Of a DNA stretch of 64,000 bases, positions 21,120 to 64,000 are shown one piece after another; the stretch's first letter is position 1; every line of letters starts with the position of its first letter. Both the position numbers and the translations under genes were made by a program. The notes under the pieces were generated by a model, which was not told the origin of the DNA, ran no database searches, and saw only the letters and a list, made by a program, of their open reading frames with translations. This stretch comes from Haliotis rubra (lineage: Eukaryota): NCBI RefSeq assembly GCF_003918875.1, contig NW_025766780.1:3472001-3536000 (forward strand), in the 5' to 3' direction.

Positions 21120-21174
21120 GCTGATCTGGGGTATTGTTGATCTGGGGTATTGTTGATCTGGGGTATTGTTGATC
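21120..21174. repeat. 16-bp tandem repeat
   Basis: gatctggggtattgtt x3. Confidence 0.75.
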
Positions 21175-22700: not shown

Positions 22701-23254
22701 ACGTGGAGTACATTTCTATATGAAGCATCAGTGACACAGTTATGTGATACCACTCTCAGTTTGACTTGTGCTATATGTTCTCGTGTTTTTCAGGTGAACA
22801 TTTGACTTGTGCATGTTTGTGACGGCTCCTACACCCGTGAGAAATGTCACCAAAAAATATATTCTTTTGAAACTGTAATAGGCTTCTCTGCCCAGTGACA
22901 GTTGAAGTTGGCTATAATAGGGTTTAGGACCTTGTGTTGTGTACTTTTTTATGTGGGGATGGTAAAGTAGCCAACTTCAAATAGGCTCTATGAATCAGGC
23001 CTCATTGCTGGTAAAAACATAACAAAGAGAAACTCAATTATTTATTTACAAAACCCGAAATATCCCAAACTACCACAAAACATTCTAAAATGATATTTTC
23101 CCAAGGCTAATGATGACAGCAAGGGCTTCCACAGCTACGTTCAGCGCACCAAGTTTGTTGGACAGCATATGAAAGTTGAGTTAGAGGACGTCAATGGAGT
23201 GGTCACAGCACAGGGCCACAATAGGTCTTCTGCCTCGAAGTACTGCTGCTCATA

Positions 23255-38086: not shown

Positions 38087-38537
38087 CTAGAGGACTGTGC
38101 TCGAAGCTAGATGTCAGCTACGTGCCGTGACTATCTCGTGGTCCGAATGTCACAGTGAACGTGCAGGGCTGTTGGAATGTCTGTGTTGATAACAGTGATT
38201 ATTAACTGATAAACAATGTCCTGAATTTGTTTTTTATTGTAAATATATGCTACCGACAGAAAATGAAGGAGCGGATGATTTCAATGCAGCTATCGTTGGA
38301 GTTTGCATACCGAACGCAACATCTAATCACAATGAAATTTCACATTATATATTCATGAAAGGCTCGCAAGGCACTTCCCAACAGAAGTGAAACTGTGTAT
38401 GTCTATTAATGGGGAAGGAAGTACAGCAAATCACATGCTTAAAATGCATCCGAGACCAATGGGGTGGTGGCGTCGTGGTGTGGGGCATCAACACACATGA
38501 CATGCAGATCGATTTGATTGATATGACATTTGACGAG

Positions 38538-38700
38538 CGAGTGAATTGTGTTGTACGCCGCTTTTAGCACTATTCCAGCAATATCACGGCAGGGGAGAGC
38601 AGAAATGGGCTTCATACATTGCACTCATGTGGGGAATCGAACTCGTGCCTTCGGCGTGACGAGCGAACACTTTAAACACAGGCTACCCTACCTCCACCGA
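38538..38700 (-). mobile_element. tRNA-derived SINE (family A)
   Basis: Reverse copy; flanking ttgacgagc direct repeat. Confidence 0.8.
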
Positions 38701-40187
38701 CACTTGACGAGCAAACACTATGTTGATAAATTGTTTTCTTTTGTCGGAGCTAATTTCGCTGGATCGGCAGACACACTGAACTGCAAGCTTACACTGTCAT
38801 TCATTATAGTATCTGGGTCGTCACAGATCATCCGTATCAAGTAGACCCTCTAATTCCTCTAAGGAAATTACAAGTTACCTCCATCACATCAAAACAAACC
38901 GAAGCTTAAGTATTGAATCCAATATGGTGCAGTGTGACTTTATGTAGGCAGATAGATGCTAGTTGACACAGCGTGAGATACATCTTACTGGTGTACTCTC
39001 ACACGCAACATCACTGACAGTAATTAATCAGCATTTATTGTTGTATTTAATATGCAAGTGCCCTGGTCTGAATTCACAGGGTGTTATATAAGGCAGGTGC
39101 ATATTTGCAGCAAAGTCAAACTCGGTTTCGCGGAGATTGTCTGAAGGCACCTGTTACGTCACTAACTTCTATCTTCACAGCTGGACAGTGACTCAGACAT
39201 TAGCGAGGCCGACGGTAGGACACGTTTGTAGAATCTCCAACAGTTGGCACTAAGCTGGCATAGGTGGTGCGTCGTCAAACACACCCTCCGATCTGTCACA
39301 AGTGGCCAGCCAAGAACATCACATGTGCTTGTTTTACTAGTCCATTGTCACAGATCAGTATTTCAATTAACAGTTAGTCTTAAGTTTGCAGGTCAACAGT
39401 TGGTCATACACATTGATTGGCAAGATTGTTCGGTGTGTAATTCAGGCTCTCTGTTCGAAATTCCATCTGATGCTTGAACGATACGCTCTTATTATGTGGT
39501 GTTTCCGCCATATTTGCTGTAACACTTACTTTAAATATATATGCACGATCTATCTATTGTAACCTAATCACAGTATATATATTAACTATTTAAAAAGGAC
39601 AACTGATACTGACTTACCGAGGAATAAAAGAGTGTTGATCTAAAATGTATTAGCTACCACGGTGACCAGCAGTCATCTAGTTGGTGGGTAATAGATGGGA
39701 ACTTAACAGATCTCTGCACCTTAGTACAGCATTTCTTTCCCAACTATGTGTGTACATAGCATTTACCAAACACATACTAGAGCCTTGTACGTAATCCGTG
39801 TCTTGATATCTCCAGGACATGAAGTAACTGAAAATCCGTCCTACCGCCTATTACCGGATGGAAAACACACACACACACACATATCAAGAATAGCTCAGCA
39901 ACAACCAGGCAAAGAAGGATATACCACCCGCATTAGAACAATAATATTTACCGCCAGGCTGTACGTCCTTGTTTGATATAGAGATTAAAACATTTCTCCT
40001 TGGAGATAATACTCCCTGGAGAGAAAGGTCATCTTTGCTGTTGAAACGGAAAGGCTATGTTTTGAGAAGCGATTAAGCTTACAATCCTATTATTTCAACA
40101 CGACTTGTAAGCAAATAAAGCAATGATGAGACACCAATCTGAAGCCAACCTAACGTGATCTCGAGCAGAACAGCGAAGGATGAGGAC

Positions 40188-43100: not shown

Positions 43101-46100
43101 GATTACCATGACACAGACTACGTCTGTTGATATTATGATCGCCAGCGCCATTGGCGTTGATGAAACAGACAGACTGTGGGACGATTCCAACTTCTACAAA
43201 ACAAGTTACCTTCCTGAACGTTGTTCAGATTCACCCTGTATAGCAACATATTCGACGATAACTGTAACGAAAACCATATATGTGTTAGATACATCCAGCT
43301 TTAATGCACCGTCTCATGTGCATCCAGTTTTCGATCGACTCTTAAGTCGATATGAAACCCTGCCATCAGCCTTACCTACTGACGTCACACAATCATTGAC
43401 CACTGGCCCCTTTAGTTCCACCTTACCTGCTACATCCGGGTCCCCAGGACACATTTCAGGTAACGTTATCTTTAAACAAGCTCACATCCTGAGTGTACAA
43501 TAACTTAGTCTGTTTGGGAGGTACAAGTGGTGAGTCTAAACATATAAGGTAAGGTTTTCAAGACGCTCATATAGAATTTAGTTTAGTTTAATAAGCATTG
43601 GTACGATATATTGGACTTAGTAGTTTACCCCGACCATTTTGTTTAATGCTGCAACAGTCCAACTGGATAACGGGTGCTTGAATATATTCGACACTGGACC
43701 AGACAAAATATTAGTTGATATTAGGAGCAACAGATTCCTTGTACACTCAACTTATGTTGATATAGGTCCTACGGTTACCCAGAATCCTAATATGGACACA
43801 TATTACGCCTAATACTGTGGAGATGCACTCATGTCAAGAGTTTTGGAGTGACCGAGTTTGGTTTTACGCCGCACTAAGCAGTATTCTAGCAATATGGTGG
43901 CAGCCTGTAAATAATTGAGTGTGGACCAGACAATCAACAGCATTAGCATCGATCTACGCATTTGGGATAGGATAGCCTGGGTCAACCAGACAACCCGATC
44001 CCGTTTGTCGCCTCTTACGACATGGGTTACTGAAGATTAATTCTAACCCGGAACTTCACGGATCTGTTTTGGATAGATATGTCGTAGTTAAACACTCTGA
44101 AAAACATCTTTGCAAGTATTCAAACCACATTTGGGTAATTCTTCAATTTATTACAAAACATCAACGTTCTAGAGTATAATGTTAAGGTTTAAGCAAATGA
44201 CGAACTTTCATCCTTATCTCACGAACTGGTTCATTCTGTATAAGATATATGGCTTGAGTTTTGTGATTTTTATCCTTGTCTTATTGTCCCTTTTACTTTT
44301 GACCAACTAGTTTTGAGTAAAATTGGTATATTTGATCTGATATTTAGATGCTGTTCTGTTACGATAGTTTTCGAGAGAACGCCATACAGAGAGTTACGTC
44401 AGACTTTCGGAACTTTACGTCAATAGTCTCATTTGCGCTTTCAAGTTCAATTTTCAATGTTTTAGAACCCGACTTTTTACTACTCTGTTTCATATCAGTG
44501 ACTGATTAAAGAACGGTGTCGGTAGAAATCCTCCAAAACACAACCTATCAGCAGACATGTTTCATTGATGGAAACACATATAAAGTATGCGTCTATCGAA
44601 TTGCAATCAGGAACATAATTTGGTTGAATGATATAAATTATCATTCCAATCCACAGCTAAGACTATTATTTGAAAAAAGACCCCAGGATATCTTTTTTGT
44701 CTGCAGCAATACTCGGAGGGGTATTTGGAAGTATCATTGGAGTCATAATCGTCCTCGGTTTTATCTTCAGAAGAAAGATTTGCAACAACAAAGTAAGTAT
44801 TGTCATCCGGACATAATTATGCTTAAAGTCACAACGGCAATATTTCTCGGCATATTTTGATTAGACCATTTACCGTTAATTCATGTCATACAGTGATAGC
44901 ATCGTTTTTTCACAAATAATTTTTTGGCAAAGCATATAATAGTAAAATAAACTTGGTTGTGAGCACTAAAATCTTTATCAAGGTAACACAATACACACCC
45001 GGGCTAGTGTACCGGTAACCAAAGTATGACGGGAACCAACGCGACCTTTGTTAATATGCTAGAGCAATCTGCAGGAACTGGTTCATCACTTCAATTCGCC
45101 ACTGATAGTTGATGTATACAAAATAATTCATATATAAAGTTCTTTAACGATAAAAGTCCAATCTAAAGTTTTGTCCAATACAAAGGATACACTATATTGA
45201 TACACTACGTCTTTATTGACGTTACACCTAGCTTCATGTTCGTATTAAGGGACCCATGAAGATCCGGGGTAGAATAGGTCTTCAGCAACCCATGCTTGCC
45301 ACAAAAGGCGACTATGCTTGTCGTAAGAGGCTCGCTGACTTGGTTGACACATGTCATCGGTTCCCAATTGCACAGATCGATGCTCATGCTGTTGATCACT
45401 GGATTGTCTGGTCCAGACTCGATTATGTACAGACCGCCGCCATACAGCTGGAATATTGCTGTGTGCGGCGTCAAACTAAACTCACTCATTCACTTACTCG
45501 TATTAAGGCATGCAGTGATTTACGGGAGTTACTTGTGTTTTCCTATTTGGTAGAGAATATTGCCTAAAAAGGCATTTACTAAGAACAGATCGGCGTGGGG
45601 GCAAAATTAGTTGCACACACTAAAGCCAACATTAAGCTAGCACATAAACCTGTATCATATGCAATGTGTTTTAGTGATGTTCCTTCTCAGAGTACATGTC
45701 ATCTGTCTTCTATTAGTTACACACCAACCCGTCACTAAACAAGCAAAGGCATGGGTCACCATTACTCCGTAAATCGAATTAAGTACTCACGGTTGATGTG
45801 AAAATGTGAATATATCACCCATAATGATAACCTGGTGTGATGCACATTTACGGAAATATATCTTTCTTTATTACCCGAATTCTCCATATTGTTCCTGCAG
45901 GTTGCTTCAGCGAAAGACGTGGAGGGAGTTGACGACGGTGTACAAGAGGGATCTCAGGGGCAAAATGATGTCTCAGAATCGACGAATCTTTTTCAGGGAA
46001 ACGATTTTTGCCTAAAACACAGATTCCACCCCTCGTGACACAACAGTTGCAGATACCCCGGAATCATGTTGGCGGAGGTAATCGGGTAACACAACTTCCG

Positions 46101-46613
46101 CCATTACAAGGAGCAGTACCTTCACGAGGACTACTGAACACCTTGAACACCGAGAGTCTGATACAGCCTCTTGGACATAGCAGTCAAACTATTTCTTCAG
46201 CATCTGCATCTACATTTACCCCACGAACAGGAACACTGCCGACATTAAGAATCCTACGAGATACACCTCCCAATATCAACCCTGATACAGAATGTTTATC
46301 TCAGCAAGTTGAAGAGCTGGGGATGTATGCAGATGTAACACCACTCGATTCGAGCCGTGTAATGGAAGAAGAGGCTGCGAAGAAAAAGACGAAGAAGAGG
46401 AAAAAGAGGAAACTTAAGAAAAGTAGAAGCGAGAACATATTAAAGAATAAAACAATAGCGGAAACTTCACCTGTGTCGCATCGTCCATCTGGTGAGAATG
46501 TTCTAGATCATGTTGACTCACTGGACAATACAACCGGGCAAAAGAAAACGAAAAGAAAACACAAGAAACGTAAACAAGAAGAGGAAACATCTGCGCCGGT
46601 TGATCCTGTCTAG
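40188..46613 (+). CDS. Paralog 3: type I membrane protein (signal, SUEL-like, CUB-like, acidic S/T stalk, TM, Pro/Lys-rich tail); two frameshifts as assembled
   Basis: Exons: 40188-40260 (MSYTLLFIVFFVQFAWQESTGRAE), 40925-41309, 41873-42205, 42572-43459, 44707-44792 (TM AILGGVFGSIIGVIIVLGFIF), 45901-46613. Frameshifts at about 41007 and in the T5 run at about 46005-46009. Confidence 0.75.
40925..41309 (+). CDS. Paralog 3 exon: SUEL/Gal_lectin-like domain
   Basis: SGCYGN..EC..TACP..QDCC..GAC..SCTGYRRC..PTC..SNYMIANFYC. Confidence 0.75.
41427..41669 (+). mobile_element. SINE family B
   Basis: Full-length copy in a paralog 3 intron. Confidence 0.85.
41873..42205 (+). CDS. Paralog 3 exon: CUB-like domain
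   Basis: LYLAHTTYP..HTCYI..IQIMAIDLHL.C..LSD..LSC..IYTS..RFWLHIQ. Confidence 0.75.
42572..43459 (+). CDS. Paralog 3 exon: S/T/D-rich stalk
   Basis: Begins ASSPNSSVTVTCG, the start conserved among paralogs; ORF 42592; donor at 43460. Confidence 0.75.
43848..44063 (-). mobile_element. SINE family B
   Basis: Reverse copy. Confidence 0.8.
45250..45493 (+). mobile_element. SINE family B
   Basis: Copy with a duplicated head hairpin (gcttgccacaaaaggcgact and gcttgtcgtaagagg). Confidence 0.85.
45901..46613 (+). CDS. Paralog 3 terminal exon: cytoplasmic tail with LPPL and poly-Lys blocks
   Basis: Acceptor ctgcag at 45900. ORF 46008-46613 is reached only after a 1-nt correction in the T run. Confidence 0.62.
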
Positions 46614-46786
46614 GAGGTTGAAGATGAGCAAAATATGAATAGCTTTGACATATGACGTAAAACACCGGATCACATGTGTGGGTTCCTCGTAGGTCGTCAT
46701 GAGGGTTGTCTGTAACTAACTTGCAACTAGATAGACGGAACTGTTACGTCTTATTGTTTTCTGGTTTGTTTGTTCTACCAATTGTT

Positions 46787-46993
46787 AAGCTATCTGTGTT
46801 GATTTGCCAGACAAAGAACAATTGCTGAGCTATGTTGATTTGCCAGACAAGGAACGGTTGTTGAGCTATGTTGATTTCACAGACAAGGAACACTTATTGT
46901 TCAGCTATGTTGATTTCCCAGACAAGGAATATGAGCTATGTTGATTTCCCAGACAAGGAACGGTTGTTGAGCTATGTTGATTTTCCAGACAAG
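46787..46993. repeat. ~36-bp tandem repeat in putative 3' UTR of paralog 3
   Basis: gagctatgttgatttcccagacaaggaac.. about 6 copies. Confidence 0.8.
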
Positions 46994-47275
46994 CATGTCG
47001 GGAAGACGATATTTTCGGACTAACAGGTTTTAAGCAATGTACTGTTTAATATCTAAGAGGTAAACAAAATCGAATTACCTTCAAGGTCTTAGTGATCTCT
47101 GACGGGATCCATGTTCAACACCACCCTTAGGATTGCTAAGCTTTATTGTTTGACAACTAATATATCAGTATTCATCATATTTGTATTGTGTATTTCATTT
47201 ATTTGATTTGATGTATAATTTTATACAATTTATCATTTTATAGTCTCTCATAACCCATTTTGGGTGGTTCACTTT

Positions 47276-47333
<58 letters not shown>

Positions 47334-48056
47334 CATAAGATTTTATGTTTTTGTACCATATGTATTTTATGTATAAATTGAGGTGAGACTTGAATAAATT
47401 ATCTGTCTGTCACATTTGTTATATGAGTGACGAATCCGCGTTATTCAATCGGAAAGTCGTGATTAACTGTGGGCTGTTCCCTACATAATATAAACATTTT
47501 TTTAGAAGCATAGTCAATGCGCTGAATAGCTGCCCAAGTGGGGTAATAGGGACGGACAGATGTTGTTTTATGTCTACCATTTGACAGTTGAGAGTGGTCT
47601 GTGTTGTCTATTTGGTAACTGTGTTAAGCCTGCACAGAGAGTGGTGTTAACTCAATCGAACCGATACAACAGTTTGAAATTGAAATACATTGCACAAATG
47701 TAACTAGCATATCACTGCGTTATGTTTTGCTGAACATTCAAGCTGTCTGTAACGAAATCAATGCCGAAATATCGCGTGTCATTCTGCACTTTGAGCACAA
47801 GATTATTGACCAGTTGAAGGTAATTTGACGCAACCCAGGGGGGGTATCTACTGGAGTATACCTCAAGGCACCTGTCCCCTACTTTTCTGACACATCAGAA
47901 TATAGAACTACTGGAGCTTGGCGTGATCTATTTGATTACCCTTGACATAAAGTGTGCTTTAAGTTGTTCACTATACACTAAGCCAGGTACATGGAATACC
48001 GGAATACATGACATGCGTAACTTACGTAAGGTTTAATATGTTGGTCTCTTTGCCTA

Positions 48057-48176
48057 GAGTAAGTGACTGACTTATATCTTAAGCCTCTTTTTAGCAATGC
48101 ACCAACAATACAACGGTAGGGTACACCAGAAATGGGCTTCACACATTGTACCCATGTCGGGAATCGAACCCGGGTA
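48057..48176 (-). mobile_element. tRNA-derived SINE (family A), partial
   Basis: accagaaatgggcttcacacattgtacccatg..gaatcgaacccggg. Confidence 0.75.
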
Positions 48177-48678
48177 TATCATCTGGTGCTTTTAAAATCC
48201 TTTTTTGCAACAAGTGCCATGTGGCAGCAATTGTAAATAGAACGTATACCATTTCACATTAGTGTCACACAATATTATACCATTTTAACGGCTCTACCAT
48301 TTAGCATGCATACTTCCGTGTGATGATTATGCGCTACCCATGGCGAGAAAATAAAACAAAATTGCATATCTTGTGACACTCAGACCTTCTGTTTTATGTC
48401 CTGCAAAGCGTGAATCATTCAACTGACCTTCTTGAATAGATCACACGAAGCGTAATTGTTAAATGACCCGATTAGCTCAATTCTTAGTAATTACTGTGGC
48501 CCAGAATACCCAGAAAACGTTCTTGGCTCAGCTCATTGGTTGTTTTCAACCAGGACGTTTTGGGTGTATAGAGTACGTTAATGAAACGTCTATGAGCTCT
48601 TAGCAAAATAACTGTCCAAGTGGCATGCATAAATGCTTACGTTTACTTACTAGAAGGAGAAAAGAAACTCATGTAACA

Positions 48679-51600
48679 ATGCATACCCTAATGTGCCAAT
48701 ATGCATTATGGTTTTCCATATTATTTCTACCACAACATGCAGCTAAAACTGGTAAGTGTACGAAAATCAACTTAATATTAAATCTGTTTTTGATATATCC
48801 CATGTAAAATTGAAATATAACGTTCTTGGCATATTTTTGAGATTTTATAATCTTAAACTTATGAATGCATGATCTAAAAATTTTGTTTCCAGCAGGATTA
48901 TCGGTTCCGGCTCAAGTCAGTACAGGTTGCCATGGGAACACACATGGTGATTTTCTTATCCCTGCATGTGCAAACCAGACTATCATTGCAGTGGCTGGTG
49001 TTTATGCTATGGTGAAGAAGGAAGACACCGGGTGTCCTGAGGCTGCAACAGAAACAAACAGGGATGAAGCAAAGTGTTGTACCTACGACTCCAGAGACTG
49101 TAAGCTGTTGTATCTGGCTTCAGAAATGTCCTTCTATGAAGATTGCACGGGAGTTTACACGTGCAAGATGAAGGTAGCTACACAGCTGACCCAGGGTTGT
49201 AACGATGTTGGATACTTCTTAAGATCCAACTACATGATGATGGAATATCTCTGTATACCAAGTACGTACCATCTTAACCTCTTCTTACTTTTAATATTCA
49301 ATATGTCTTCGTCATTACGGAGGTAGAACTTCGTAGAAGATTTCTACATTTAAACTCAAATGGTGGTCCTGTGCATAGGGCTCAGGTCACAATTCAGTTG
49401 AAGTTAAGCAGCATTGAGCTCAGAGAGTCCTTTTGGGGTGGGTAACCGTGTTTGGCAGCTTGACTCCTGAGAGTCTCCAGTACTTCAGTCCTGCCCCACA
49501 ACGAAACACATGTGATACATGTGGTCTCACCTTAGGCAAGTTAGTTTGTTCAAAATTGCCTCTGTTCATCCAGCAGAGAATGGGTACCCGGTGGGATAAG
49601 TCATGTGACTATAACCTTAAGCTTCTAGCGCCTAAAAGGCAGCTTGGGTTAACAGGGGTAATAATGTTGTGATGTTTGTGCGCGCTTTGAGCACGCCCTT
49701 TTGTGGTGTAGAGTATTGCGCGGTATAAGTACCCTCAGTTATATTATCATCATCATGGTGTGTACGCGTGCTTCGCGACAAGCGTGACTGTGTTAATTTG
49801 ATGTAACTCAGTTTATTATTCCAACTCCACCATGATCTGTCAGCCTTATAGGTATAGGTTTTTCGTGTTCAATTAAAACACGACTGAAGTCTTTGAAGGG
49901 GATTTAGTCAGGTTGAAGAAAAAACGACATGAAAAACGGTAGCTTATCACAGGATTTCCTACGTCTGAAAACGAGGCACATTGAGTCCCTAGTAACTCAT
50001 ATCGCATAGATGAAATAAAAGATACCCTGTCTGTACACCAGCCTGAATGTTGCCTGCAAGGTTGATTGTGGTACTGGTTAACTGTATGTACATGTGATAG
50101 TTACACGGACGGCTCGTCTCGTGCAATCCAGATGCGCTATCAGTTTAAGATTGGACAATCCGGGTCAGCGCACGTCAGGGTTTAATGACGGGAAGATAAA
50201 TAGAGAAAGATCGCCCGTTATGGTCAACCAAAATATATAATTATGCAAAAATGGTCATTTTAAAGAGCTCAATGTGATCTCCCCTCGTTCTAGGAGTGAC
50301 TNNNNNNNNNNNNNNNNNNNNNNNNNNNNNNNNNNNNNNNNNNNNNNNNNNNNNNNNNNNNNNNNNNNNNNNNNNNNNNNNNNNNNNNNNNNNNNNNNNN
50401 NNNNNNNNNNNNNNNNNNNNNNNNNNNNNNATATATATGTTTGTCCGTTGTTTAACGCCGCACTCAGCAATATTCCAGCTATATGACGCCGGTCTGTAAA
50501 TAATCGAGTTTGGGCCATGCAATCCAGGGGTTGACATAACGAGTATCTATCTGGGATAAGATGACATGTGTCAACCAAGTCAACAAGCCTGAACATAATA
50601 ACCACCCTTACGACTGTAACGATGGGTTACTGACGACCAGTTCTAACCCGGATCTTCACGAGTACCAACGTATATTATCACATAATCAATGGTATGAAAC
50701 TTAGTTACTATACCCGGACATGCTGAAACAGTATGACACGCGTAATCGTGTATTTGTACTATTTGGCAACATGGTCATACGTTTTAAACTAATTTAAGGC
50801 TTATCTTGGTTTTAAAAGGATAAAAACGAGGTCCGAGTTCGAGTTCAATTGATGTCAATTGATGTCAACTCTGTTCTGATTTCTAGTTAAGGTTCATTAA
50901 CCACTTTCGTTTTGTGTCGACATAGACAACACGTGTACTCATCTTCTCTGTTGATATCAAATTATATAAAATGATATCATATTTGGTAGGATCTCTGACG
51001 TTGGAGGGAGTGGAAGATGCAAGTGTCTCCGGCACGTCGGTGTATCTCAAAAGCAAGGATTATCCTGCTGGTATCCCAGCTGGTACTGAGGTAAGCTGTT
51101 CCGTAGCCGCATCCTGTCGCCATCACCGCAATCCACGTGGATCTTGGATCTTCAGAACGATAGCAGTGGATCGTGTCAGCAGCGTCTCAACATTAAAGAC
51201 AACGATGAAGAAATGCAAATAGATTGCGGCAGCAACAACGGGGACACCTTTAAGATAACTGAGGCCTTCAAGAGCAAATCTCATTTTCTGGTGATCACCT
51301 TCTTGAATAACAACAGTGGAAATACTGGACGCTACTGGCTTGAAATAAAGTGTATGTTGTGTTATTATCTTTGTGTGTGTTGAGTAGAAGTGAGGTTAGT
51401 TTTGTATAGGTATTGTTTCAGACATATAGCGATCCCTTTCAAATATCAGAGTACACGGGTTTGTTTCGCTCCAAAGTTCGACGCAGTCAACACATTGCCG
51501 GTTTTGTCCGAAACTAATTAGAATTTATTAATATTTTGGTAGTCGTATATCAGTTTTGTTTTTACATTACATATAGAATGCATAAACATTATTAGTTACG

Positions 51601-53150
51601 AAAGTACATCAGATATAATACCTAACATGCTTATTCTGAAGAAAGTATACTCCGCGGAATAGGTGGTCATTTCCTTTCTGACATTGCTTTCACTACAAAG
51701 TGGATTTTCAATAATATTTCCATTATAATTTACATGAAGACGTATGGCTACAGTTGGTAATTTAAATTACTTCGTTCCATACTTTCATTTCAGCTGAAGC
51801 AAATGGTGCAACTGTGGAAATGACGTGTGGAAATGACGCAGCATCTACCCCTCCAACTGTTGACAAGTGTACAGATAACAGTACTGATCATTCTAAAGGG
51901 CCTGCTACTGTCACAGAGGATCCCGTCATGTCAGAATTAAGTAAGAACTAGATTCATAGCTCATTTTCTACTACGAAGAGAAGGTGGTTGATGTGTTTTC
52001 TCCTGGGAAGAAATGCCCATATTATTTGACAGTTATAGAATTCTGGAACTGTAAACTCAATACAATTATTTTATTAGATGCCTTCTAGTCTTGTGGTCAT
52101 ATTCTATCAGCCAGTTCATCAATTGATTCAGAACGTGAGATTAGTAGGTGCTATGCATGTACATTTCATACCAAAGGCAACACACACATTAACATGGACA
52201 TTTATCTTCAATTTGTTTCAAACATTTTAAATAATTATTCTTCTAATTTCAGACAAATATAAGTATGCTACGATTGGTCTAGGTGTTGCCGTAGCTATGT
52301 TCGTCACTGTCATAGTGTGTGGGTTCCTCGTCAAATGTCTGAAGGCCTTAAAGCAGTCTAATAAGGTAAGGCAATTCAGCATCAGGCCTTTGAAGTCAAC
52401 ATAATTATGTTTTTGATGTCTCATATAATTTTCAAAGATCTTCAAGACCATCTCAAACCGTACCCTCTATTTCAAATATGTGGGGGGCGGTAGGGTAGCC
52501 TAGTGGTTAACGCGTTCGTTCGTCACGCCGAAGGCCCGGGTTCGATTCTCCACATGGGTAAAATTTGTGAAGCCCATTTCTGGTGTCCCCCGCAGTGATA
52601 TTGCTGGAATGTTGCTAAAAACGGCGTAAAACCATACTCAGTCAGTCAGTCAGTCAAATATGTGAACTGAAAACGGAAGTAAATGGATAACATGATTGCT
52701 ACCACACTCATTATTTTATTGAGGTAAGTAGCAACTTTAACTTAAACTTAAACACCTGGCCATTTGTGCTACTGCCATGTATCTCCGTGATGTCAGCTTC
52801 ACAGCAATCATTTACCCAATACGGCAGCCTGTTTTCAACAAACAAATTATTCCATTATCATTTCTGCACACATATGGCCAATGATATGTAAGGAACGTAG
52901 CACCTGTAGCACCTGTATCTAATTACTCTTTCTTCTATAAATATATCCTAATTGGTATCACTTTCCCTTTTCACTCACAGCAATACGATATACCTGTCCA
53001 AATATGTAACTGGTATAGTCACGATGTATACTTGCAAACGTGGTGAAAGAATTGCTTTCATTTATTGTAAACCGTACTGATTTTCAGACAAAAGTCAAGC
53101 CCATCACCAAGAGATCCGATGGGTTTGGTGACCAGCAGGTAAAAAGTTAA
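48679..53150 (+). CDS. Paralog 4: type I membrane protein (signal, SUEL-like, CUB-like, short stalk, TM, very short tail); disrupted CUB exon, possible pseudogene
   Basis: Exons: 48679-48751 (in-frame ATGs also at 48625 and 48691), 48893/48896-49261, 50990-51351, 51794-51940, 52253-52365 (TM YATIGLGVAVAMFVTVIVCGFLV), 53088-53150. Confidence 0.75.
48893..49261 (+). CDS. Paralog 4 exon: SUEL/Gal_lectin-like domain
   Basis: TGCHGN..PAC..TGCP..AKCC..RDC..DCTGVYTC..QGC..SNYMMMEYLC; intact frame; NAGNAG acceptor. Confidence 0.8.
49435..49755 (+). mobile_element. SINE with core/Deu-like domain and L2-type tail
   Basis: ccttaggcaagttagttt..catccagcagagaatgggtacc..gcgctttgagc..gcgcggtataagt..(atc)n. 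Confidence 0.55.
50437..50662 (-). mobile_element. SINE family B
   Basis: Reverse copy. Confidence 0.8.
50990..51351 (+). CDS. Paralog 4 exon: CUB-like domain (frame disrupted)
   Basis: VYLKSKDYP..VSCSV (ORF 50971) joined to DLQND..SCQQRLNIKD..IDC..RYWLEIK (ORF 51144). Confidence 0.7.
52483..52653 (+). mobile_element. tRNA-derived SINE (family A)
   Basis: Full copy; 11-bp TSD tcaaatatgtg at 52472 and 52654. Confidence 0.85.
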
Positions 53151-53662
53151 CTACTAGTATGCGTCGACAACCTTCTTTGTGTACACATCTTGAAGCGCTG
53201 TTATCTGTTACAGACAAATCAGGATATCAATTACCTAATAACCTTACTCCCATACTTAAATCCTCAACATTGGTTGCTTGAATGTTCAAAAGATCATTTA
53301 TTTATTGAATATTTTTTAATCTGCAACATTAAATTACTTCCTTGAGTAACAATATATACTCATGCCAATAATGGTTGTCATCCCCTTCAATATTTTTCAT
53401 TGGAGAGGGGTTGTGGGGTTGTGGGTTGTGGGTTGTGGGTGTGGGGTGTTTGTGGGGTTGGGGTCCAATAGTATGACCAGAAATATTTGAGAATTTTAGG
53501 AATATGTTTAATTGGATTTCTAGTATAAACAACCTTGACCTGCTATCAAGTGCTTGGTTTCATTCAATAGAAACAACTCCGTTAATCCTTTATCATTAGT
53601 TTGTGAAGAGTTATCCCCCTTTGTTTACTTGCTAGCAGACGACATTTTCAGAGATCCTCAGT

Positions 53663-54642
53663 ATGGATGATTTAGAGAAGAGGACGTTAATTTTAGAGTA
53701 TTATAACAAAGACATCAGATCAGCTAAAGTGATTTCAAGTAGAACAGGCATCCCTTTGTCCACTGTTTATCGTGTTTTGAAAAATATTGCAAATGGATAT
53801 GGCATTGAGCACCAGGGAGGCGCAGGTAGGCCCAGAAAATTGACTGTCGGTGACAGGAGGCGGCTTGGTATTCTTGTTTCTAAAAACAAACGAAGGAGTT
53901 TAGAAAACTTAAGGCTGGATATGATTGATAGAGGAACTGTGGCTGTCTGTAAGGAGACAATTAGAACTGAGCTGCATGCAATGGGTTGGCAGAAAAGTCG
54001 AGGAATTCCATCACCGATCATGAAACCTGAACAAAAGGAGCGAAGGTTGAACTGGTGCTTACAGCATAGAAATTATAACTGGGACAATGTGATTTTCTCA
54101 GATGAAAGTTCTGTGTGGCTGTTTCCTAATACACTGAAATTCTGGACCAAACAAACTGAAACACCTTTGTATCAGCGCCCAAAGTACAGTCCGAAATTTA
54201 ACGTGTGGGGGGGCATATCTGTGTTAGGGGCAACGCCCCTCTGTGTATTTGAAGGGAATATGCACAGTGAGCGGTACACAGATATTCTCGAGGGACATTT
54301 ACTTCCATCTGCTCACGTGTTCTATGGAAATTTTTTGATTTTCCAGCAGGACAACGACCCAAAACATCGTTCAAAGCATTCACAGGCCTGGTTTCGGACC
54401 CAAATATGACATTATTAGATTGGCCAAGCTATAGCCCTGACTTAAATCCAATAGAAAATGTTTGGGGACTTATGAAGGAAAGTGTCAATAACAAAAATCT
54501 GACTAATATTGCTGAAATGAAAGAAGAGTTGGTCCGATATTGGGACAGCATGGACCACGGCTTTCTAACTTCTTTGATCAGTAGTATGCCCCGCCGCATT
54601 GAAGCCTGCATTGCTGCCCATGGTGACTTGACAAAATACTAA
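53663..54642 (+). mobile_element. Tc1/mariner (DD34E) transposase, one frameshift at about 54403
   Basis: HTH-like N-terminus, GRPRK, VIFSDES, FQQDNDPKH and WPSYSPDLNPIENVW motifs. The second D-to-E spacing is 34 aa after adding 1 nt. No matching right TIR found. Confidence 0.9.
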
Positions 54643-56904
54643 CTGTTAACCTGTCTTTGAAGCTGGAGTTATGTTCTGCTAATTTTCACATTTAATACGT
54701 AAGTAATGAGTGAAATTTTAAAAAAAATTACAATTGTCAAACTGTTGTCGAGAAATAGGATCGGTCTCTATTCTCACCAACCTTTCCATCAAACTTTCGG
54801 TGTGCACAAACTCGATTTGACGTGTGATGTGTTGTCAAACTCGTTTTGTTCAGGAACAACCAATCGCAGTCAACGAACTTGTCACGTGACCGCACCGATA
54901 GAGACTTGCCGCTCAAATGACACGAAAGTTTGACAACATGTGTTTGACGTGTGGAAACGCGAGTTTGACAGTTTCTAAAATTTTAACAGCATGTGTTGTC
55001 AAACTTTAGTTGTCCGTGTGAAGGCCGCTTAAGTATCGACGTGAGGTGGTAACATGTATTCATGCATGTACAGTACAACATTTAACTGCAACCACAGTGG
55101 GAATTGATCCCCGCCTCCAAACGGATCACACAATCACGAACAATACAATATACATCCAGAAAGTACTTGCAAACTGTCCTTGGTGCCTCTATTTATGATC
55201 CTGTTTTCACATACCGCACACCTCGTCACGCAATCAACAAGCAAGCCACTGAAACGGATCAAACTTAACCGCACCTTGCTGCTTAACGTAGAGTTCCCGG
55301 ATCTATTGTAACACATGCAAACTCTAATTGACAGGACGTCTAGCGTATTGACAAGTCGATGCTTACAACCTCTGACTCGTTAATAAGGTGATTTTAACGT
55401 CAGAACGACATTGAACGGTGATGGTTGTGTGGTTAATAGAATGATAGCATTTGATGATTGTTTGGTTGATAGAATGATATCATAAGATTATTTGAAAATC
55501 ATTTAAACCATACAGGAACTTGTTTTCAATACGTTTTTGTACCCAGAAGCGTATATAACTCATATATTTTATAATAGCGTAATATACAAAACACATAGAG
55601 CGTATACTACGTATTCGCCGGTTACAACATTACGATGTGTCGAGTGAAGCATCTATTCTCCTGGGCGTGTTACACAAGAAGGTTTTGTGTGCTGATTGAA
55701 TGCGCGGTGTATATAATCATCTTATTTGAGCCTGAATACTTTTGTTTCAAGCCTTTACCACTCTCTGATTCTTCTGTAACCTGGGTTTGATTGGCCTCTC
55801 AAATAGTGTCATATAGGCAAGTAAAATGTACTGATTGTGCTTCATATAAAGTTAACTAAATGATCTACTCTGAAGTAATGCAACTTTAAATACACATTCC
55901 TTCGTCATTATGCATGCTACACCATACGTGTTGTTTGTTAATGTGAATAACACACAATGAGTGTTTAGCTGTAAGGTGCTCATAATAACACTTTTATCTA
56001 ACCATAACGGTTACACAATGCCATGGCTTGCTAATTTGCAACGTCCACGCGCCGAAGGTTGAAGTTTCAACATTGTGTCAACCTCTTTATATATTACAAT
56101 TTGTAGCTACTGACATTGATTCAATTGATTGAATAGAACTGGTCCGTTACCCATTTGTTCCTGTGGTGCTCGACAAAGCCGTCGAAATATTGGCGTTGTT
56201 TCATAGCATTTTACCGTTATTATGTCAACATGGCTAAAGGTGTTTTCTTCTTACAAATGTACATGTAAATATTCTTACATATGTAGTGTTATTAACACCC
56301 TTCCATCCATTTCACACAAAGTTCAGGATTCTTTCTTGTGTACTGCTTATAAGCCTAACACTGTTAATGATTTGACATCAAAGAAGACTTGTCATGACCT
56401 CAGGGAAAGAATCGAGCTATTTGTTTCTTATCATACGTAAATCGATTCTTTATTCGTTAAGGGGAGTCAACTCATGGGTGCTTGAGTGTTCGTTGAAACG
56501 TAGGACTGTGTAGGACATACACTCTGTATTGACAGAATACATGTACTATTTTATCCGAGAGACGTTCGACGAATTTTTGTTATGTGTTTATAATGATGAG
56601 CCCCTAAGTATACGCAGCGATAAGTGTTATGGGGATCTTTGGACATGAAAAGTTGTCCATACCATCTATAAGTCAATATTGCTTTAACTACAACAAAAGT
56701 GACACTCTATTGTACGCGTATGGCTTCGAATGCTCTGCCGCAGACACTGGCGGACTTGACATGTTCAAGAGAAATATATCAGTACTGTTTCTGAAGATTC
56801 ATGCTTCTCTAGTGTTTTGTAAACATAATAGCGTCCAGCTTGAGTTGATTATCCACCGAAGAGCAGAGATGTTGCAGTGTACAGCTCCACAGGCCTACTG
56901 TACG

Positions 56905-57128
56905 GTTGTTTGCTTGTTATTAAACTCCGGACCCAGCAAAATTCCAGCTATATGGCGGTGATCTGTAAATATAATCGAGTGTGGACCAGACAGTCAAGTG
57001 ATCAGCAGCATGAGCATCGATCTATGCAACTGGGATACGATGACCTGTGGCCTGACCGCCCGATCCCGTTAGTCGCCTCTTACGACAAGCATGGGTTGCT
57101 GAAGATTGATTCTAATCCGGATCTTCAA
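56905..57128 (-). mobile_element. SINE family B
   Basis: Reverse copy. Confidence 0.8.
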
Positions 57129-57944
57129 GAGTCACGGGACTACCGAAGTCACCATGACCACCTGTTTTAAGAAACAGCTGTGTGTGGGATTTTTCATAAA
57201 AGTGGGCTCTTCAATATCATTCAATACATTTCATTCTACCATTGGCATCATATTTAATTAAGGGTGAGTTCTTTTCTTTAGGCGGTCACAAAAGCATCAG
57301 ATTGTCGAAAAACATCTAAAAAACGAAACTGTTGCTGTTTCATAGATATATACTGGGTACACATGTACACTACTTTTAGATCTTCTTGATCAAGGTGAAG
57401 CGTCTGACATTGCAGAATACAATTACATGAATTTCAAAGTGGTAATTGGACAATTTCAGAGTGAGAGTGTCACATGTACAGTTGTTATATCCATTTTGTA
57501 AACGTGTTTTCTATTCCTTAATTGTGTTAACATCATACAGAGGGCCAAGGGTCAGACCACCCGTTTAAGTCTAGCAAGGCGACTGGACAAAGCCACACGA
57601 CCATATACCCTCAATGCAGGGCATGAAGCAATGCCACTCAAAGAAGTTAACCTATGAGATACATGACCTGGCATTGCTTGTGTTAGCTGCCCAGCAGCAG
57701 TTCCACCCTGAAATCTTAGGGTATTCATCTGTCAGAGTGGCAAAACCCTGTATCTTGGACATATTGTGTGATCGGTAACAAACTCCACTATTATCGAAAC
57801 ACATGGGGAATATCTGAAAGCAGGTACCGCATACAATGGTTTAGGATAACCATGTACTTTATATCTGTGAGTAAGTTTCCTGACCTTGCAGAGAAACATT
57901 GACATTTATGGACAGTGGGCGAGCGAATGCGTTTAGGTTGACGG

Positions 57945-58057
57945 CGCTGACAACACAGCTCCTCGCTGACAACACAGCTCCTCGCTGACAACACAGATAC
58001 TCGCTGACAACACAGCTCCTCGCTGACAACACAGCTCCTCGCTGACAACACAGCTCC
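57945..58057. repeat. 19-bp tandem repeat
   Basis: cgctgacaacacagctcct, about 6 copies. Confidence 0.85.
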
Positions 58058-58318
58058 CCAGCTCCTCACGTACAAGGATCCGGCGATAATTAAAATAACG
58101 TCAGCTCTATGGTTCAAATCTATGGATACCGCATCCCGAAGAAACTAGTGGATACTTTTGCACAGTGATTGTGCCCTCTTCGACAACCAAGCGAACTTTG
58201 TCCTGTTTTCGATATTAAACACTTCATAAAAATCCCATTAGATATACGATCAAAGACAAAATGCGCAGTTCAAATATTGCAGTTACATAGTATATATATA
58301 TATACATATGTATGTATG

Positions 58319-58361
<43 letters not shown>

Positions 58362-58535
58362 AAACGAGGGAAATTATTATAAGACCCTGCACATCCCATA
58401 CTCAATGAACAATTGTGTGTCAAAATTTCAACCACTGATTGGGTGCAATTCACTCGTTTACTGGTCCCCATGATCCAGTCCAAGGATTGTGGGGCGTGAT
58501 GCTTGACACCGTTCACTGACCTCCACCTCTATTCG

Positions 58536-58894
58536 ACCGCCTCCGTGGTGTAGTGGTTAGAGCGTCCGCCCGGAGAGCGGAAGGTCGCGGGTTCAATCCC
58601 GGACCGCGTCATACCAAAAGACGTTAAAATATGGTACTTGTTGGTCCCTGCCTGGCGCTCGGCATTAATGGGTACAACAAGGACTGGTCGGCTCGGAGTT
58701 AGTATAATGTGTCTGAGTGGGATATTCATGCTTCACTGCGGCATGGTATCTCAGTGAGCTAGCACTATAAAACAAGCTTCAGTCTGGGCTAGTACAAGCA
58801 GCCGCACATACACATACACACACATGCACGTCGCCATATGAGCGAAATATTCTCAAGCACGACGTTAAACCCAATTTCACCTCACCTCACCTCA
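58536..58894 (+). mobile_element. tRNA-derived SINE, MetaSINE-like
   Basis: A/B boxes (tggtgtagtgg, ggttcaatccc); central aaaatatggtacttgttgg..gcattaa..ggactggtcggctcggag; (CACCT)n tail; 13-bp TSD ccacctctattcg at 58523 and 58895. Confidence 0.85.
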
Positions 58895-59097
58895 CCACCT
58901 CTATTCGGTCGGGTTGGTAATATGGCCTGCTAGGCAGAATTTCATGGCGTTATGCAAAATTAACTGACTCTCAGATTTATTCCGGTTCTTTTCGCAGCAA
59001 GTTTGAAAAGAAAATCACAGGAGATGAAAGTATATTATTCACATGTATTCATTGTTGTTCTGTTCCACATGGTTGTAGCTTGCATCCCCCTATAAAG

Positions 59098-60116
59098 TGC
59101 TTCACTTTGAACAAGATGTCCGTGACGAGCCTCCCCTATATATTGCTTCACTTTGAACAAGATGTCCGTGACGAGCCTCCCCTATATATTGCTTCACTTT
59201 GAACAAGATGTCCGTGACGAGCCTCCCCTATATATTGCTTCACTTTGAACAAGATTTCCGTGACGAGCCTCCCCTATATATTGCTTCACTTTGAACAAGA
59301 TGTCCGTGACGAGCCTCCCCTATATATTGCTTCACTTTGAACAAGATTTCCGTGACGAGCCTCCCTATATATTGCTTCACAAAAGATGTCCGTGACGAGC
59401 CTCCCTATATATTGCTTCACTTTAAACAAGATGATGTGACGAACCTCCCCTATATATTGCTTCACTTTAAACAAGATTTCCGTGACGAGCCTCCCCTATA
59501 TATTGCTTCACTTTGAACAAGATATCCGTAACGAGCCTCCCCTAAATATTGCTTCACTTTAAACAAGTCCGTTTTCCTACAATCGCCAGCGGCTGACGGG
59601 ATGGTGTAAATCCAGCTAGGGTCCATGCAGGTAGCAAAAGTAATGTAAGTCCCCATGGTTCCTAGTATGGTGATCTACCATCAGTTGTTGGCGATCTATA
59701 GCCCGTGTTTTATACTGTATTGTCCTCTTTAATTGAAATGTTTTAGCTTTGTTCGCTAGTTGTATTCATATCTGTGATTCTCTAGTATTTTTACTGTCCA
59801 TCGTCGACAGGTTTTAATCTTAAAAATGTTCTCTCTTTATATTGTATAAATTGTTTTCGTCACGATATGGCTGAGATATTGCCGATGTGACGTTAAATAT
59901 TAACTCACTCACTCACTCACTTGAACAAGATGTCCGTGACGAGCCTCCCCTACATATTGCTTCACTCTAAACAAGTCCGTGACGAGCCTCTCCTGTATAT
60001 TCCTTCACTTTGAACAAGTCCGTGACGAGCCTCCCCTACATACTGCTTCACTACAAATAAGTCCGTGACGAGCCTTCCCCATATGTTGCTTCACTATACA
60101 CAAGATGTCCGTGACG
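59098..60116. repeat. 46-bp minisatellite interrupted by a retroposon insertion (about 59570-59920)
   Basis: tgcttcactttgaacaagatgtccgtgacgagcctcccctatatat, about 10 copies then about 4 copies. Confidence 0.85.
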
Positions 60117-60263
60117 CGCACCCTGTTTGCGTTCGTATACGAAGGACTCTCTACTCACCTACCGTAACAAGAAACTCGTGTCATACGTTACGATCTCATT
60201 TCTTGATAATCACTCCAAGTCGTTACGCACAGACAATCAGAACGTCTACTATAACCGTTAGAC

Positions 60264-63200
60264 ATGCTGGTCGTTGTGATTGCGATTCTTTTGTGCTTAC
60301 AGAATTTGCGTAAGTACATGGGTTTAATTCTTACCTTCCNNNNNNNNNNNNNNNNNNNNNNNNNNNNNNNNNNNNNNNNNNNNNNNNNNNNNNNNNNNNN
60401 NNNNNNNNNNNNNNNNNNNNNNNNNNNNNNNNNNNNNNNNNNNNNNNNNNNNNNNNNNNNNNNNNNNGCTATTTCCAGATTGCATTCCATGGCCTCTGCA
60501 GACAGCCACCGGGTGTTTTGGAAACACCTTTGATGACTTCCTTACTCCTTCTTGCAATACTTCACATGTTATGGCTATCAGTGGGGTGTTTGCAATGGTC
60601 AAAGAACGGACAACAAATTGTCCAGAAGAAGCGGAGTCCAGTAACAGAGATGAGGAGAAGTGCTGTCGTGTAGCACCAGAGGACTGTAAAATGGTCTGCA
60701 CGGTCTCGGACATGCCATATTATTCAGAATGCAGTGGGTTGGAGACTTGCGTGTCTAACGTTGCTAAAGCTGTCACCACATGCAATGATACCAACTTTCT
60801 TGACACATCAAATTATATGCTGATGGAATTCTACTGTATCACAAGTATGTCAAGCATGCATTCCTTATTCTGTTATAATACTTGTTTTCATGCATATGTA
60901 TTAACAAAGCGCCATTCTGTATATACGCACGGTGTATATAAGCGTAATAGAATATAATACATTGCATGTGTTTAGGATTACACCTTGTCAGAAAATATAT
61001 AACATATCTTACATTTGACCACTTTCTAAATGACATTGTCGATTCATTAAACATATTCCCCCTATTTCTTTAGGTATCCGGGCAAAATATCTGTTACGAT
61101 AAGAATACATAACATATGATACGAGAAAGAAATGTAAATATATTTTCTTATACATCTATTCATTTATATACACGCATCAAGGTCTTCTTTTCTGACTCTG
61201 AATGAGGTTATATGTGCCCTGACCAGTAGATCCGTGTGCATTCAAGTTACCATTCACAATTCCCTAGGGACTATATACAACACATGCTGCTGGGACACTA
61301 GATGTTTTACTTCCATATATCTTATATCCTGATGGATGGACAAGTCAAGAAATATCACGCTAGTCTAGAATGATGTGGCAAGTCTGTATCGCCTCAGCTA
61401 CTGAAAGTTGGCATTGTATTTTATTTGTTGGCAGATATATATTATTAAATGAGACAGACTTACTCCTGGGACTAGATGTTAATGTAGGTGAACAGAGGCT
61501 TTATTGAACTAACTTTCTTGCCTCGGATGAGACCACGGTTTTCATGTGAATGTACTGATTCGGTTTTCACCGACACTTCATATCCGTCAGATTACGTACT
61601 GGGCCTAGTTATTGTAAAGAAAATTATTGGTGAAGAAATATCACTATCGGGTTACGATCTTAGGGGCAGGAGCTTTAGAAGACCAAAGAGGACGTAGTGA
61701 CAACTATCTTCCTGAAGGTTAAGAGCATCTTAGGATATCTTCTGATGAACAAACGCAGTTAATCATCAAATATTAGTGGCTTACTTTCGTTCGAATTTAA
61801 CTATTGATTGACTTGTTTAATATCATTTCTCGCCAGGGTCCCTCATCCTCAATGCAAGCAGCACTGAAGCAGGTACAACGAGAGGGACCGCTGTGTATGT
61901 ACAAAATCAAGGTTACCCTAAGTCGTCAGAAATAGGAGGGTCTTGCAGTGTTTCCTCCTCCTGCAATACAACAATAGTATTGAGTGTCATACACCTCAAC
62001 CTTAACAACAGCTCCAACGCATGTAATCAACATGTGAACATCACTGATGGAAGCGACAATCTCAGCATTAACTGTTCCCATAACAACCATGGAGATCACT
62101 TTCCTATTACAGATGTCTACACAAGCATCGGCTATTTCCTTGTGCTGGATTTTACTACTGTCGTGACTGGCGCCAAGGGACAGTTGTGGATAGAAATTAG
62201 AGGTAATAGGTAGCGCAGGAGGTAAAAAAACGTCTGTTCAAAAATTCGAAATACTTTTGAAATAGAAGTTTGACGTTCAAAGCCTGTAATATACCCTCGG
62301 ACACAGAGCACGTTGGGATTAAATTGCATGAGTATCATAGCAAAACCATTTATCAGTGTCTTTATCAATGTTAATATTATTAACTGCAAACGTTTACAAC
62401 GTTCAGCTGACGGCCCCAATACGCTTCCTTTCGTAAGGTTCAAATCCATATTCGACCATGGACCTTCGATGTGGATCGTCAGCAATTTCTGAACCTTTGG
62501 CTGTTGACGAATGCCCCGTTAACACAACAACAACAACAACAACAACAACAGCGTCCACGACAACACCATTATCACACATGGTGTCGGAAAGGACGTCTAC
62601 CATCCTCAGAAACACTTCACGTTAGCATTGATTGGGTTGGATATATATAGTTATTTAATTGTCAAACACCAATACATGCATGCTCTACATTACCAGCAGT
62701 TAATATGTAAGTCATATATCTAATTGATATGTGCTGTATTCGGAACTTAACTTTAAACCTCGTACTGATGAACTTCCTCAGGAGTGTAACTTCATTTCAT
62801 TGACGTATTTGGAAACTAAACAGCAAGGAACAATGTCATTTGTCAAATTAAACCAATATGTTGTGAGATATGACGGGTATTAATTCTCAGTATATAGGGA
62901 TAGGTTTTGAAGTATCAGCAGATACGCAAAAATGAATATATCATTGTATACAAGTAGCTCAGATTAAAGAAAGGCAACTTTTGAGGAAATCAGCTTCACT
63001 TTGGTCCAGTTTCATTGATTTCACATAAATATGTATTCCCCTTTACTTTCAGAAAACTGGATAAACGTATTGATTGTCGTTGGGATACTCTTAACCATGA
63101 TGATTGTGTTTTCGGGAATACTTGAATGTAGATCTCGGAGACAGAAGAGAGCGAACAAGGTATTATTCCATGTCTTGATGTACCATTTGTATCACATTGT

Positions 63201-64000
63201 TCCAGTGTACTATTCATGAGTTTCAGAGTTTGAATGCTTATTGCGTAGGTATGACCATAGTTTTCTTCTTAGTCTTAACATACCACGTTGTGAACCCTTT
63301 AACTCACTCCTTGCGGACAAAGGTCGGTGGTCATAAAGTTTCTTAATGCTTGTTCACATGGGTTGGTCACCTCTCAGTGACCCCGCCTTCATGGTCCGTT
63401 GTTCTCAGCATTAGCCATATTTAGTTTTCGGAGCAATATCAATTGCACAATACATTACGTCGTGGAATGTTTTTTTCCAAGTTGCATTATTAGTGTGTTA
63501 TTTCATAAGGTAAAATTGATAGTGAATCACCCTGACAACTTGGCATGTTGTACAGGTACATCCATCCGGTAACACACAGGCCAGCGACCATCATGGACTG
63601 CCTCTCTATGCTTTTGGCCCGAAACCGGAGACAATTACACAGATAGCGCCAACCCGAGGAATACTGTCTCCGCAACAGTCATCAAGACAAACCGTACATA
63701 AACGCACCTCCTCAAGTGACTCTGTTCCACCGGAACTGAGGAAGTTCGGCGATACCAAATTGCAGACTATACCGAGTGCTGGTCAGACACTTCCTCCAGT
63801 CAGGTCTCCACAGCCTCCTCGGTCAGTAGACGTGCCCACATTATCTTCACAATCTCCAACTGTGTCAGCATCTGCAGGAGCGCTAAATGGTCACGTTGGC
63901 AACAACATCGTTGTGGAAGATGCGGGCCAGAGTGAATACATGCAGACAGAGAGGAACAGGAAAAAAAAGAAGAGAAAGAAAGACAAAACGAGTGAAGATG
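60264..64000 (+). CDS. Paralog 5: type I membrane protein (signal, SUEL-like, CUB-like, Thr stalk, TM, Pro/Lys-rich tail), runs off window end; 31-nt insertion in stalk exon
   Basis: Exons: 60264-60309 (MLVVVIAILLCLQNL), 60479-60844, 61837-62202, 62407-62620, 63053-63159 (TM WINVLIVVGILLTMMIVFSGIL), 63556 to beyond 64000 (open frame VHPSGNT...RKKKKRKKDKTSED). Confidence 0.78.
60479..60844 (+). CDS. Paralog 5 exon: SUEL/Gal_lectin-like domain
   Basis: TGCFGN..PSC..TNCP..EKCC..EDC..ECSGLETC..TTC..SNYMLMEFYC. Confidence 0.8.
61837..62202 (+). CDS. Paralog 5 exon: CUB-like domain
   Basis: VYVQNQGYP..SCSV..IVLSVIHLNL..AC..V.ITD..INC..VYTS..QLWIEIR. Confidence 0.78.

Follow-up and report, generated by a model that had tools for sequence, protein, structure and literature searches.

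Do the VxPx-like strings in the cytoplasmic tails of a tandem receptor array of the blacklip abalone (Haliotis rubra) send these receptors to cilia or sperm flagella, as a preliminary description proposed from their likeness to the signals of polycystin-1 and rhodopsin? The window, meaning here the whole stretch of 64,000 nucleotides that was analysed (contig NW_025766780.1, positions 3,472,001 to 3,536,000), carries the 3' parts of three tandem receptor paralogs (3, 4 and 5) on the + strand, two of which (4 and 5) encode a K-V-x-P string shortly after the membrane helix. This string is probably an old, facultative, membrane-proximal element of mollusc receptors that combine SUEL-like and CUB folds, and by analogy with characterised signals it may act in sorting or docking.

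This reading was drawn mainly from the wider family. A profile search of 1.84 billion representatives returned 131 relatives; all 23 whose source organism was checked were molluscs (gastropods and bivalves), and none had a described function. Motifs were counted in 45 membrane-anchored representatives, most at or below 50% mutual identity. V.P was present in the first 25 tail residues of 13 of the 45, against 2.7 in shuffled tails and 9% of distal windows, and [KRQ]V.P in 8 of the 45, against 0.74 in shuffles. V.P was about five times as frequent as in shuffles and three times as frequent as in distal windows, and the form preceded by K, R or Q about ten times as frequent as in shuffles; because these tests take no account of common ancestry, they show that the motif has been retained and not that it arose independently. 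Genera with the juxtamembrane motif number at least eight among the gastropods and bivalves: Haliotis, Patella, Lottia, Mytilus, Potamilus, Mizuhopecten, Mya and Ruditapes. Because of this excess (13 of 45 against 2.7) and its presence in both classes, a facultative juxtamembrane K-V-x-P is, as judged from the aligned sequences, a genuine trait of the receptor family. The caution of the preliminary description that short motifs can arise by chance held within the window, where V.P counts in the three tails were at chance level (2, 2 and 1, against 0.89, 1.05 and 0.05 in shuffles); it did not hold at the juxtamembrane site of the family.

Similarity searches of the receptor genes were run exon by exon. 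Each copy is ordered as signal peptide, Cys-rich exon, CUB-like exon, Thr-rich stalk, membrane helix and tail exon(s), and ..NK are the last residues of the membrane-helix exons, at a phase 0 GT donor. The receptor exons were placed as follows, in window coordinates.

44661 to 44792, + strand: paralog 3 membrane-helix exon (start approximate), ending ..RRKICNNK, GT donor, phase 0; from a hydrophobicity scan, the location of the peptide and the orthologous exon of Haliotis asinina.
45901 to 46613, + strand: paralog 3 tail exon, starting VASAKD; frame shift from a 1-nucleotide deletion near 45993-45996.
48679 to 49261, + strand: paralog 4 signal-peptide exon (48679-48751) and SUEL-like exon (48893-49261); from tblastn with the Haliotis rufescens and H. 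asinina orthologues and a reading of the sequence.
50990 to 51351, + strand: paralog 4 CUB-like exon, frame-broken; from comparison with H. asinina.
52254 to 52365, + strand: paralog 4 membrane-helix exon (start approximate), ending ..KALKQSNK, GT donor, phase 0; from a hydrophobicity scan and public model P0138.
53088 to 53138, + strand: paralog 4 first cytoplasmic exon, starting TKVKPI; the public model continues into VKS and a stop.
60264 to 60309, + strand: paralog 5 signal-peptide exon, GTAAGT donor, phase 1; same exon and donor in H. asinina.
60479 to 60844, + strand: paralog 5 SUEL-like lectin-fold exon, intact; from a structure model and the H. asinina orthologue.
61837 to 62202, + strand: paralog 5 CUB-like exon, intact; CUB fold taken from the model of family member P0132.
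62458 to 62620, + strand: paralog 5 Thr-rich stalk exon; start as in the public model, with the actual acceptor slightly upstream of it.
63053 to 63159, + strand: paralog 5 membrane-helix exon, ending ..ECRSRRQKRANK, GT donor, phase 0; from a hydrophobicity scan and the public model.
63556 to 64000, + strand: paralog 5 tail exon, continuing past the window edge; from public model P0151.

All strings listed in the preliminary description (VxPx-like, LPPL/LPPV and poly-Lys) were recovered where it had placed them. In paralog 5, RANK (63148-63159) is followed by the GT donor and VHPSGNT (63556-63576) is preceded by an AG acceptor; KVHPS spans the junction 63159/63556, with VHPS at 63556-63567. 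In paralog 4, SNK ends at 52365 and TKVKPI follows at 53088-53105 (KVKPI at 53091-53105). Both junctions are used by public H. rubra models, P0151 (267 residues, RANK-VHPSGNT) and P0138 (153 residues, SNK-TKVKPI). In paralog 3, SAPVDPV and the stop occupy 46590-46613 (VDPV 46599-46610, TAG 46611-46613), and PVDPV lacks the preceding K, R or Q, unlike the strings of paralogs 4 and 5. LPPL lies at 46095-46106 (paralog 3) and LPPV at 63790-63801 (paralog 5); poly-Lys blocks lie at 46380-46421 and 46542-46574 (paralog 3) and at 63958-63987 (paralog 5). The paralog 5 tail also contains QIAPT at 63640-63654, and each of the three paralogs has one Cys within its basic block.

The position of the intron bears on whether the motif is made by splicing. 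In Mizuhopecten, Mytilus and H. asinina the intron separates K from V precisely. The exon of Patella, H. rufescens and H. rubra paralog 4 has its start two codons further 5', so that the valine is its third codon, and K-V-x-P is still encoded. Two exon-start positions with K-V-x-P in both mean that the valine is not just a by-product of the splice site, and a splice-consensus origin of the valine was rejected as a full explanation.

Two further abalone species were used to follow the three paralogs. In H. asinina, locus L001 contains all three orthologues and matches window 39673-63592 collinearly, with DNA identity of about 65-83%. The H. rufescens locus (L002) contains paralog 4 in tandem duplicate (10249-12948 and 20861-24051), and no paralog 3 or 5 orthologue was found within 10 kb of it. 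As read from these loci, the receptor array changes quickly between abalone species. Further, more divergent copies of the same receptor family, with CUB-like and lectin-like exons, were seen upstream in the window at 2939-3322 and 16395-17971.

The annotated paralog 4 products keep KVxP in three species: K-TKVKPI in H. rubra, K-VKVQPA in H. asinina and K-VGPP in H. rufescens. Conservation of VxPx in orthologues, the check named in the preliminary description, gave a mixed picture: the motif is retained in these annotated products and at the family juxtamembrane site (13 of 45), but KVHPS of paralog 5 and the terminal position of VDPV in paralog 3 are not kept. The paralog 3 stop is TAG in H. 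rubra and GAG at the same site in H. asinina, and the orthologues run on past VDPV for 9 residues (H. asinina) and 15 residues (a third species, P0152). As an internal string, V-x-P-V is shared by the three species; only its terminal position is new. On this comparison the C-terminal VDPV of paralog 3 is an accident of a derived stop in a frame-broken copy and not a rhodopsin-like terminal signal, contrary to the preliminary description. The full paralog 5 product ends in ..AEKEL, outside the window, and therefore lacks a terminal VxPx; C-terminal VxPx was found in none of 38 family tails. As neither is kept in H. asinina, the two most striking look-alikes, the polycystin-1-like KVHPS and the rhodopsin-like C-terminal VxPx, are unreliable when read against its sequence.

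The K-V-x-P strings of paralogs 4 and 5 would then be local copies of an old family motif, whose codons lie at the beginning of the first cytoplasmic exon and which stands at the end of the membrane helix, behind a cysteine and a basic block. There the motif may serve as a membrane-proximal sorting or docking signal, a role we infer from its likeness to the characterised signals of polycystin-1 (PMC3172256) and fibrocystin (PMC2812845). That it is some post-Golgi sorting signal is a fair way short of probable but is a serious candidate on this analogy; that it is a mere helix-ending proline without a partner is possible, though doubtful; and cilia are an unlikely destination when judged from the same likenesses.

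Several observations weigh against a conserved sorting or docking element of this kind. The H. asinina orthologue of paralog 5 uses the same acceptor and reads K|VHTS instead of K|VHPS (ACA against CCA). In paralog 4, H. asinina aligns only ambiguously with the other two species at the DNA level, owing to an indel of 8-10 codons: its first cytoplasmic exon (L001 13462-13545), in which a short stretch is repeated, exceeds those of H. rubra and H. rufescens by this length, so that the homology of KVQPA with KVKPI is uncertain. The tail exon of paralog 3 begins VASAKD in H. rubra and VVVEKD in H. asinina, and the juxtamembrane VxP is therefore missing from this paralog in both species. Across the family, 32 of the 45 representatives have no juxtamembrane V.P and two thirds lack the proline; the representatives are homologues, and the shuffle test for this reason overstates their independence. 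Known VxPx signals lie at chain termini, the abalone motif next to the membrane. Ciliary signals have been described as 'not stereotyped' (PMC11240719), and the role of Arf4 in ciliary delivery is disputed: two studies (PMC3930517, PMC5409180) reported it to be dispensable, both in the assembly of cilia and with regard to rhodopsin and kidney phenotypes.

The best surviving alternative, although unlikely, is that the motifs arose by chance in proline-rich disordered tails, the valine coming from G-starting exons after ..AAG|GT.. and the proline being neutral. The shuffle-level counts in the window agree with this, as do the loss of the proline in H. asinina paralog 5, its absence from paralog 3, the 32 representatives without V.P and the high dN/dS (ratio of nonsynonymous to synonymous substitution rates) of the paralog 3 tail (0.64). 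Chance does not readily yield the family-level enrichment over both shuffles and distal windows, the persistence of the motif in gastropods and bivalves, or a valine that is the third and not the first exon codon in three genes.

Other tail motifs are more strongly enriched than V.P and raise a second alternative. [LF]PP[LIVP], usually after a basic residue as [KR]-x-LPP[LI], was present in 15 of 38 tails against 0.9 expected, and polybasic runs resembling nuclear-import signals in 14 of 38 against 0.7. The [KR]-x-LPP[LI]-type motif was seen in family proteins P0009, P0019, P0050, P0057, P0058, P0060, P0115 and P0132; LPP[LI] and polybasic blocks are both kept in the paralog 3 orthologues (H. 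asinina and P0152). The tails might thus serve nuclear signalling after membrane cleavage, through the polybasic import signals, or the docking of SH3-, WW- or EVH1-type adaptors through [KR]-x-LPP[LI], with K-V-x-P a minor element or a FERM-type or kinase-type docking site. Parts of the fibrocystin tail also concentrate in the nucleus (PMC2812845). This alternative is unlikely: the cleavage site and the partner are hypothetical, polybasic runs could simply bind acidic lipids, and such functions are compatible with a sorting role for K-V-x-P.

Before the ciliary proposal is weighed, the architecture of the receptors has to be considered. The predicted layout is a signal peptide, a SUEL-like lectin fold, a CUB fold, a stalk, a single membrane helix and a long disordered tail, and the description of these proteins as lectin-like receptors gained support from it. 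The AlphaFold model of the H. asinina orthologue P0132 has a confident ectodomain, a helix (328-351) whose end coincides with the exon boundary, and a tail with a predicted local distance difference test score (pLDDT) below 50. A model of the first domain, built on the exon of paralog 5, reached pLDDT 91.5. In Foldseek its top nine matches were lectin domains of latrophilin, LAT-1 and SUL-I (probability 0.99-1.0, expectation (E) values from 4e-3), with CSL3 at rank 11; the second domain, taken from the P0132 model, matched CUB domains of C1s, MASP, TSG-6, Kremen and cubilin (probability 1.0). A PDB profile search with the first domain gave only CSL3 (E 0.46); Pfam PF02140 (SUEL) gave no match for the receptor exons at E up to 1, nor for full-length P0132; and PF00431 (CUB) scored 14.2 bits, below its cut-off of 21.4. 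No Pfam family was above threshold for any receptor exon or for P0132. Weak Pfam matches of the tails to K-rich nuclear proteins were rejected as low-complexity matches. A word-based protein search started from P0001 returned the two Haliotis orthologues and nothing else; with the 27-row family alignment it added P0138 only, and with the tail alignment it gave P0151 and P0152. A literature search on six locus names of family members found nothing.

The N-terminal fold is the same as that of the SUEL or rhamnose-binding lectins (latrophilin Lec, LAT-1, SUL-I and CSL3; Foldseek probability 1.0, template modelling (TM) score about 0.5-0.59), and the cysteine pattern is common to the C-terminal half of the domain. 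It differs from these lectins in the missing PF02140 match, in an extra CC pair and in the sugar site, whose motifs are YGR, DPC and KYL: in the HMMER alignment of the family consensus to CSL3, DPC and KYL are replaced by other residues. SUEL-type domains also occur in PKD1L2, and that of latrophilin binds teneurin; by analogy, the abalone SUEL-like domain may likewise bind a protein. Like CUB receptors of the neuropilin, Neto, Kremen and DCBLD type, these proteins are type I receptors with a membrane-adjacent CUB fold and a signalling tail; unlike those, they add a SUEL-like domain, and their Pfam CUB score is below threshold. We know of no other receptor that pairs CUB with a SUEL-like domain.

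Motifs of the class (K/R/Q)VxPx bind Arf4 in its guanosine triphosphate (GTP) form together with ASAP1, are described as required for delivery to cilia, and lie at the C-terminus of rhodopsin and polycystin-1 and at the N-terminus of polycystin-2. The polycystin-1 signal is KVHPSST at the extreme C-terminus, in a class written (K/R/Q)VxPx (PMC3172256), and the sea-urchin sperm protein SpREJ3 carries a SUEL domain (PMC1934368); the background given in the preliminary description was correct on both points. The abalone strings share with the polycystin-1 and rhodopsin signals the K-V-x-P-x pattern in a disordered cytoplasmic segment of a membrane protein. They differ in that the known signals are terminal in multi-pass proteins, whereas the abalone motif lies about 7-18 residues after a single membrane helix.

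By position, fibrocystin (PKHD1) offers, on comparison of layouts, the closer analogue. It is likewise a single-pass type I protein with its signal directly after the membrane helix, the abalone placement following from the P0132 model and the exon structure, and in both a cysteine or cysteines stand beside a basic block and are followed by hydrophobic-x-Pro (IKP in fibrocystin). The fibrocystin signal comprises 18 juxtamembrane residues, in which CCC, KTRK and IKP blocks were mutated and the cysteines are palmitoylated (PMC2812845). A signal of this type would be expected to bind Rab8 and to suffice for targeting to cilia. The likeness is incomplete: fibrocystin carries a critical KTRK and three cysteines that are palmitoylated, the abalone copies have one Cys each, for which palmitoylation is only assumed, and no sequence homology is claimed. 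A Cys at the membrane exit was present in 29 of the 45 family representatives.

Taken as genuine targeting signals of the rhodopsin or polycystin type with Arf4-type recognition, the motifs would make these proteins ciliary or sperm-flagellar lectin-like receptors. In favour, KVHPS of paralog 5 is identical to the first five residues of the polycystin-1 signal KVHPSST (PMC3172256), the juxtamembrane site is enriched family-wide, the order of Cys, basic block and hydrophobic-x-Pro resembles fibrocystin (PMC2812845), and a SUEL domain is present in SpREJ3 (PMC1934368). We nevertheless regard this as quite unlikely, since H. asinina reads KVHTS, the motif is juxtamembrane and not terminal, paralog 5 ends in ..AEKEL, none of the 38 tails ends in VxPx, the terminal position in paralog 3 is derived, and ciliary delivery reportedly does not require Arf4 (PMC3930517, PMC5409180). 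The stronger proposal is improbable: that the cysteine, basic block and K-V-x-P form an ancient sorting signal, older than the separation of gastropods and bivalves, by which SUEL-CUB receptors reach ciliary or apical membranes. A cytokine-receptor Box1-like site was also considered and rejected: it needs V-x-P-x-P, and a second proline was present in only about 3 of 15 motif-bearing members.

If K-V-x-P does work as a sorting signal of these mollusc receptors, it would provide a compact, testable way into the sorting of membrane proteins in molluscs, animals with heavily ciliated epithelia and larvae, and would assign a function to an unstudied, fast-duplicating receptor family. Delivery to ciliary or apical membranes, were it true, would add a single-pass ciliary receptor family in a lophotrochozoan and would mean that VxPx- or fibrocystin-type signals work next to the membrane outside vertebrates. 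What is available at present is the description of the family and of three motifs that recur in its tails (K-V-x-P, [KR]-x-LPP[LI] and polybasic blocks).

Two of the paralogs are interrupted in this assembly. Compared with H. asinina, paralog 3 has a 2-nucleotide deletion in the lectin exon (about 41010) and a 1-nucleotide deletion in the tail exon (about 45995); the correction of the latter made in the preliminary description was justified, because H. asinina and the third species (P0152) read the exon in one frame. The CUB exon of paralog 4 has an 11-nucleotide deletion (about 51118) and a 7-nucleotide tandem duplication (about 51145), and its public model P0138 is truncated and begins downstream of these breaks. 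The paralog 5 gene looks intact. Ectodomain-exon dN/dS against H. asinina was 0.21-0.30 for paralogs 3 and 4, no higher than for paralog 5, for which reason the breaks are, on this measure, recent, allelic or assembly errors. The assembly (GCA_003918875.1) is a Nanopore/Illumina hybrid meta-assembly (PMC6774278); its sequence QXJH01000027.1 matches the window at 100% identity, and its runs of N coincide with those of the window.

Other features placed in this part of the window are two gaps and a transposon remnant; both gaps are intronic and neither bears on any tail motif.

50302 to 50430, no strand: assembly gap within paralog 4 intron 2; flanks collinear with H. asinina L001, flanking exons complete against P0132.
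53663 to 54642, + strand: Tc1/mariner transposase remnant in two open reading frames (Pfam HTH_Tnp_Tc3_2 and DDE_3), 3' of the last annotated exon of paralog 4 and outside the receptor.
60340 to 60467, no strand: assembly gap within paralog 5 intron 1; flanks collinear with H. asinina, the exons before and after it in phase 1.

The interval that separates paralogs 4 and 5 contains a 46-base-pair tandem array of 10.6 copies (59087-59567) and a related 43-base-pair array (59932-60104). Window 52484-52650 and 38535-38703 contain a repeat common to H. rufescens (85-92% identity), which starts like a transfer RNA and may be a short interspersed element.

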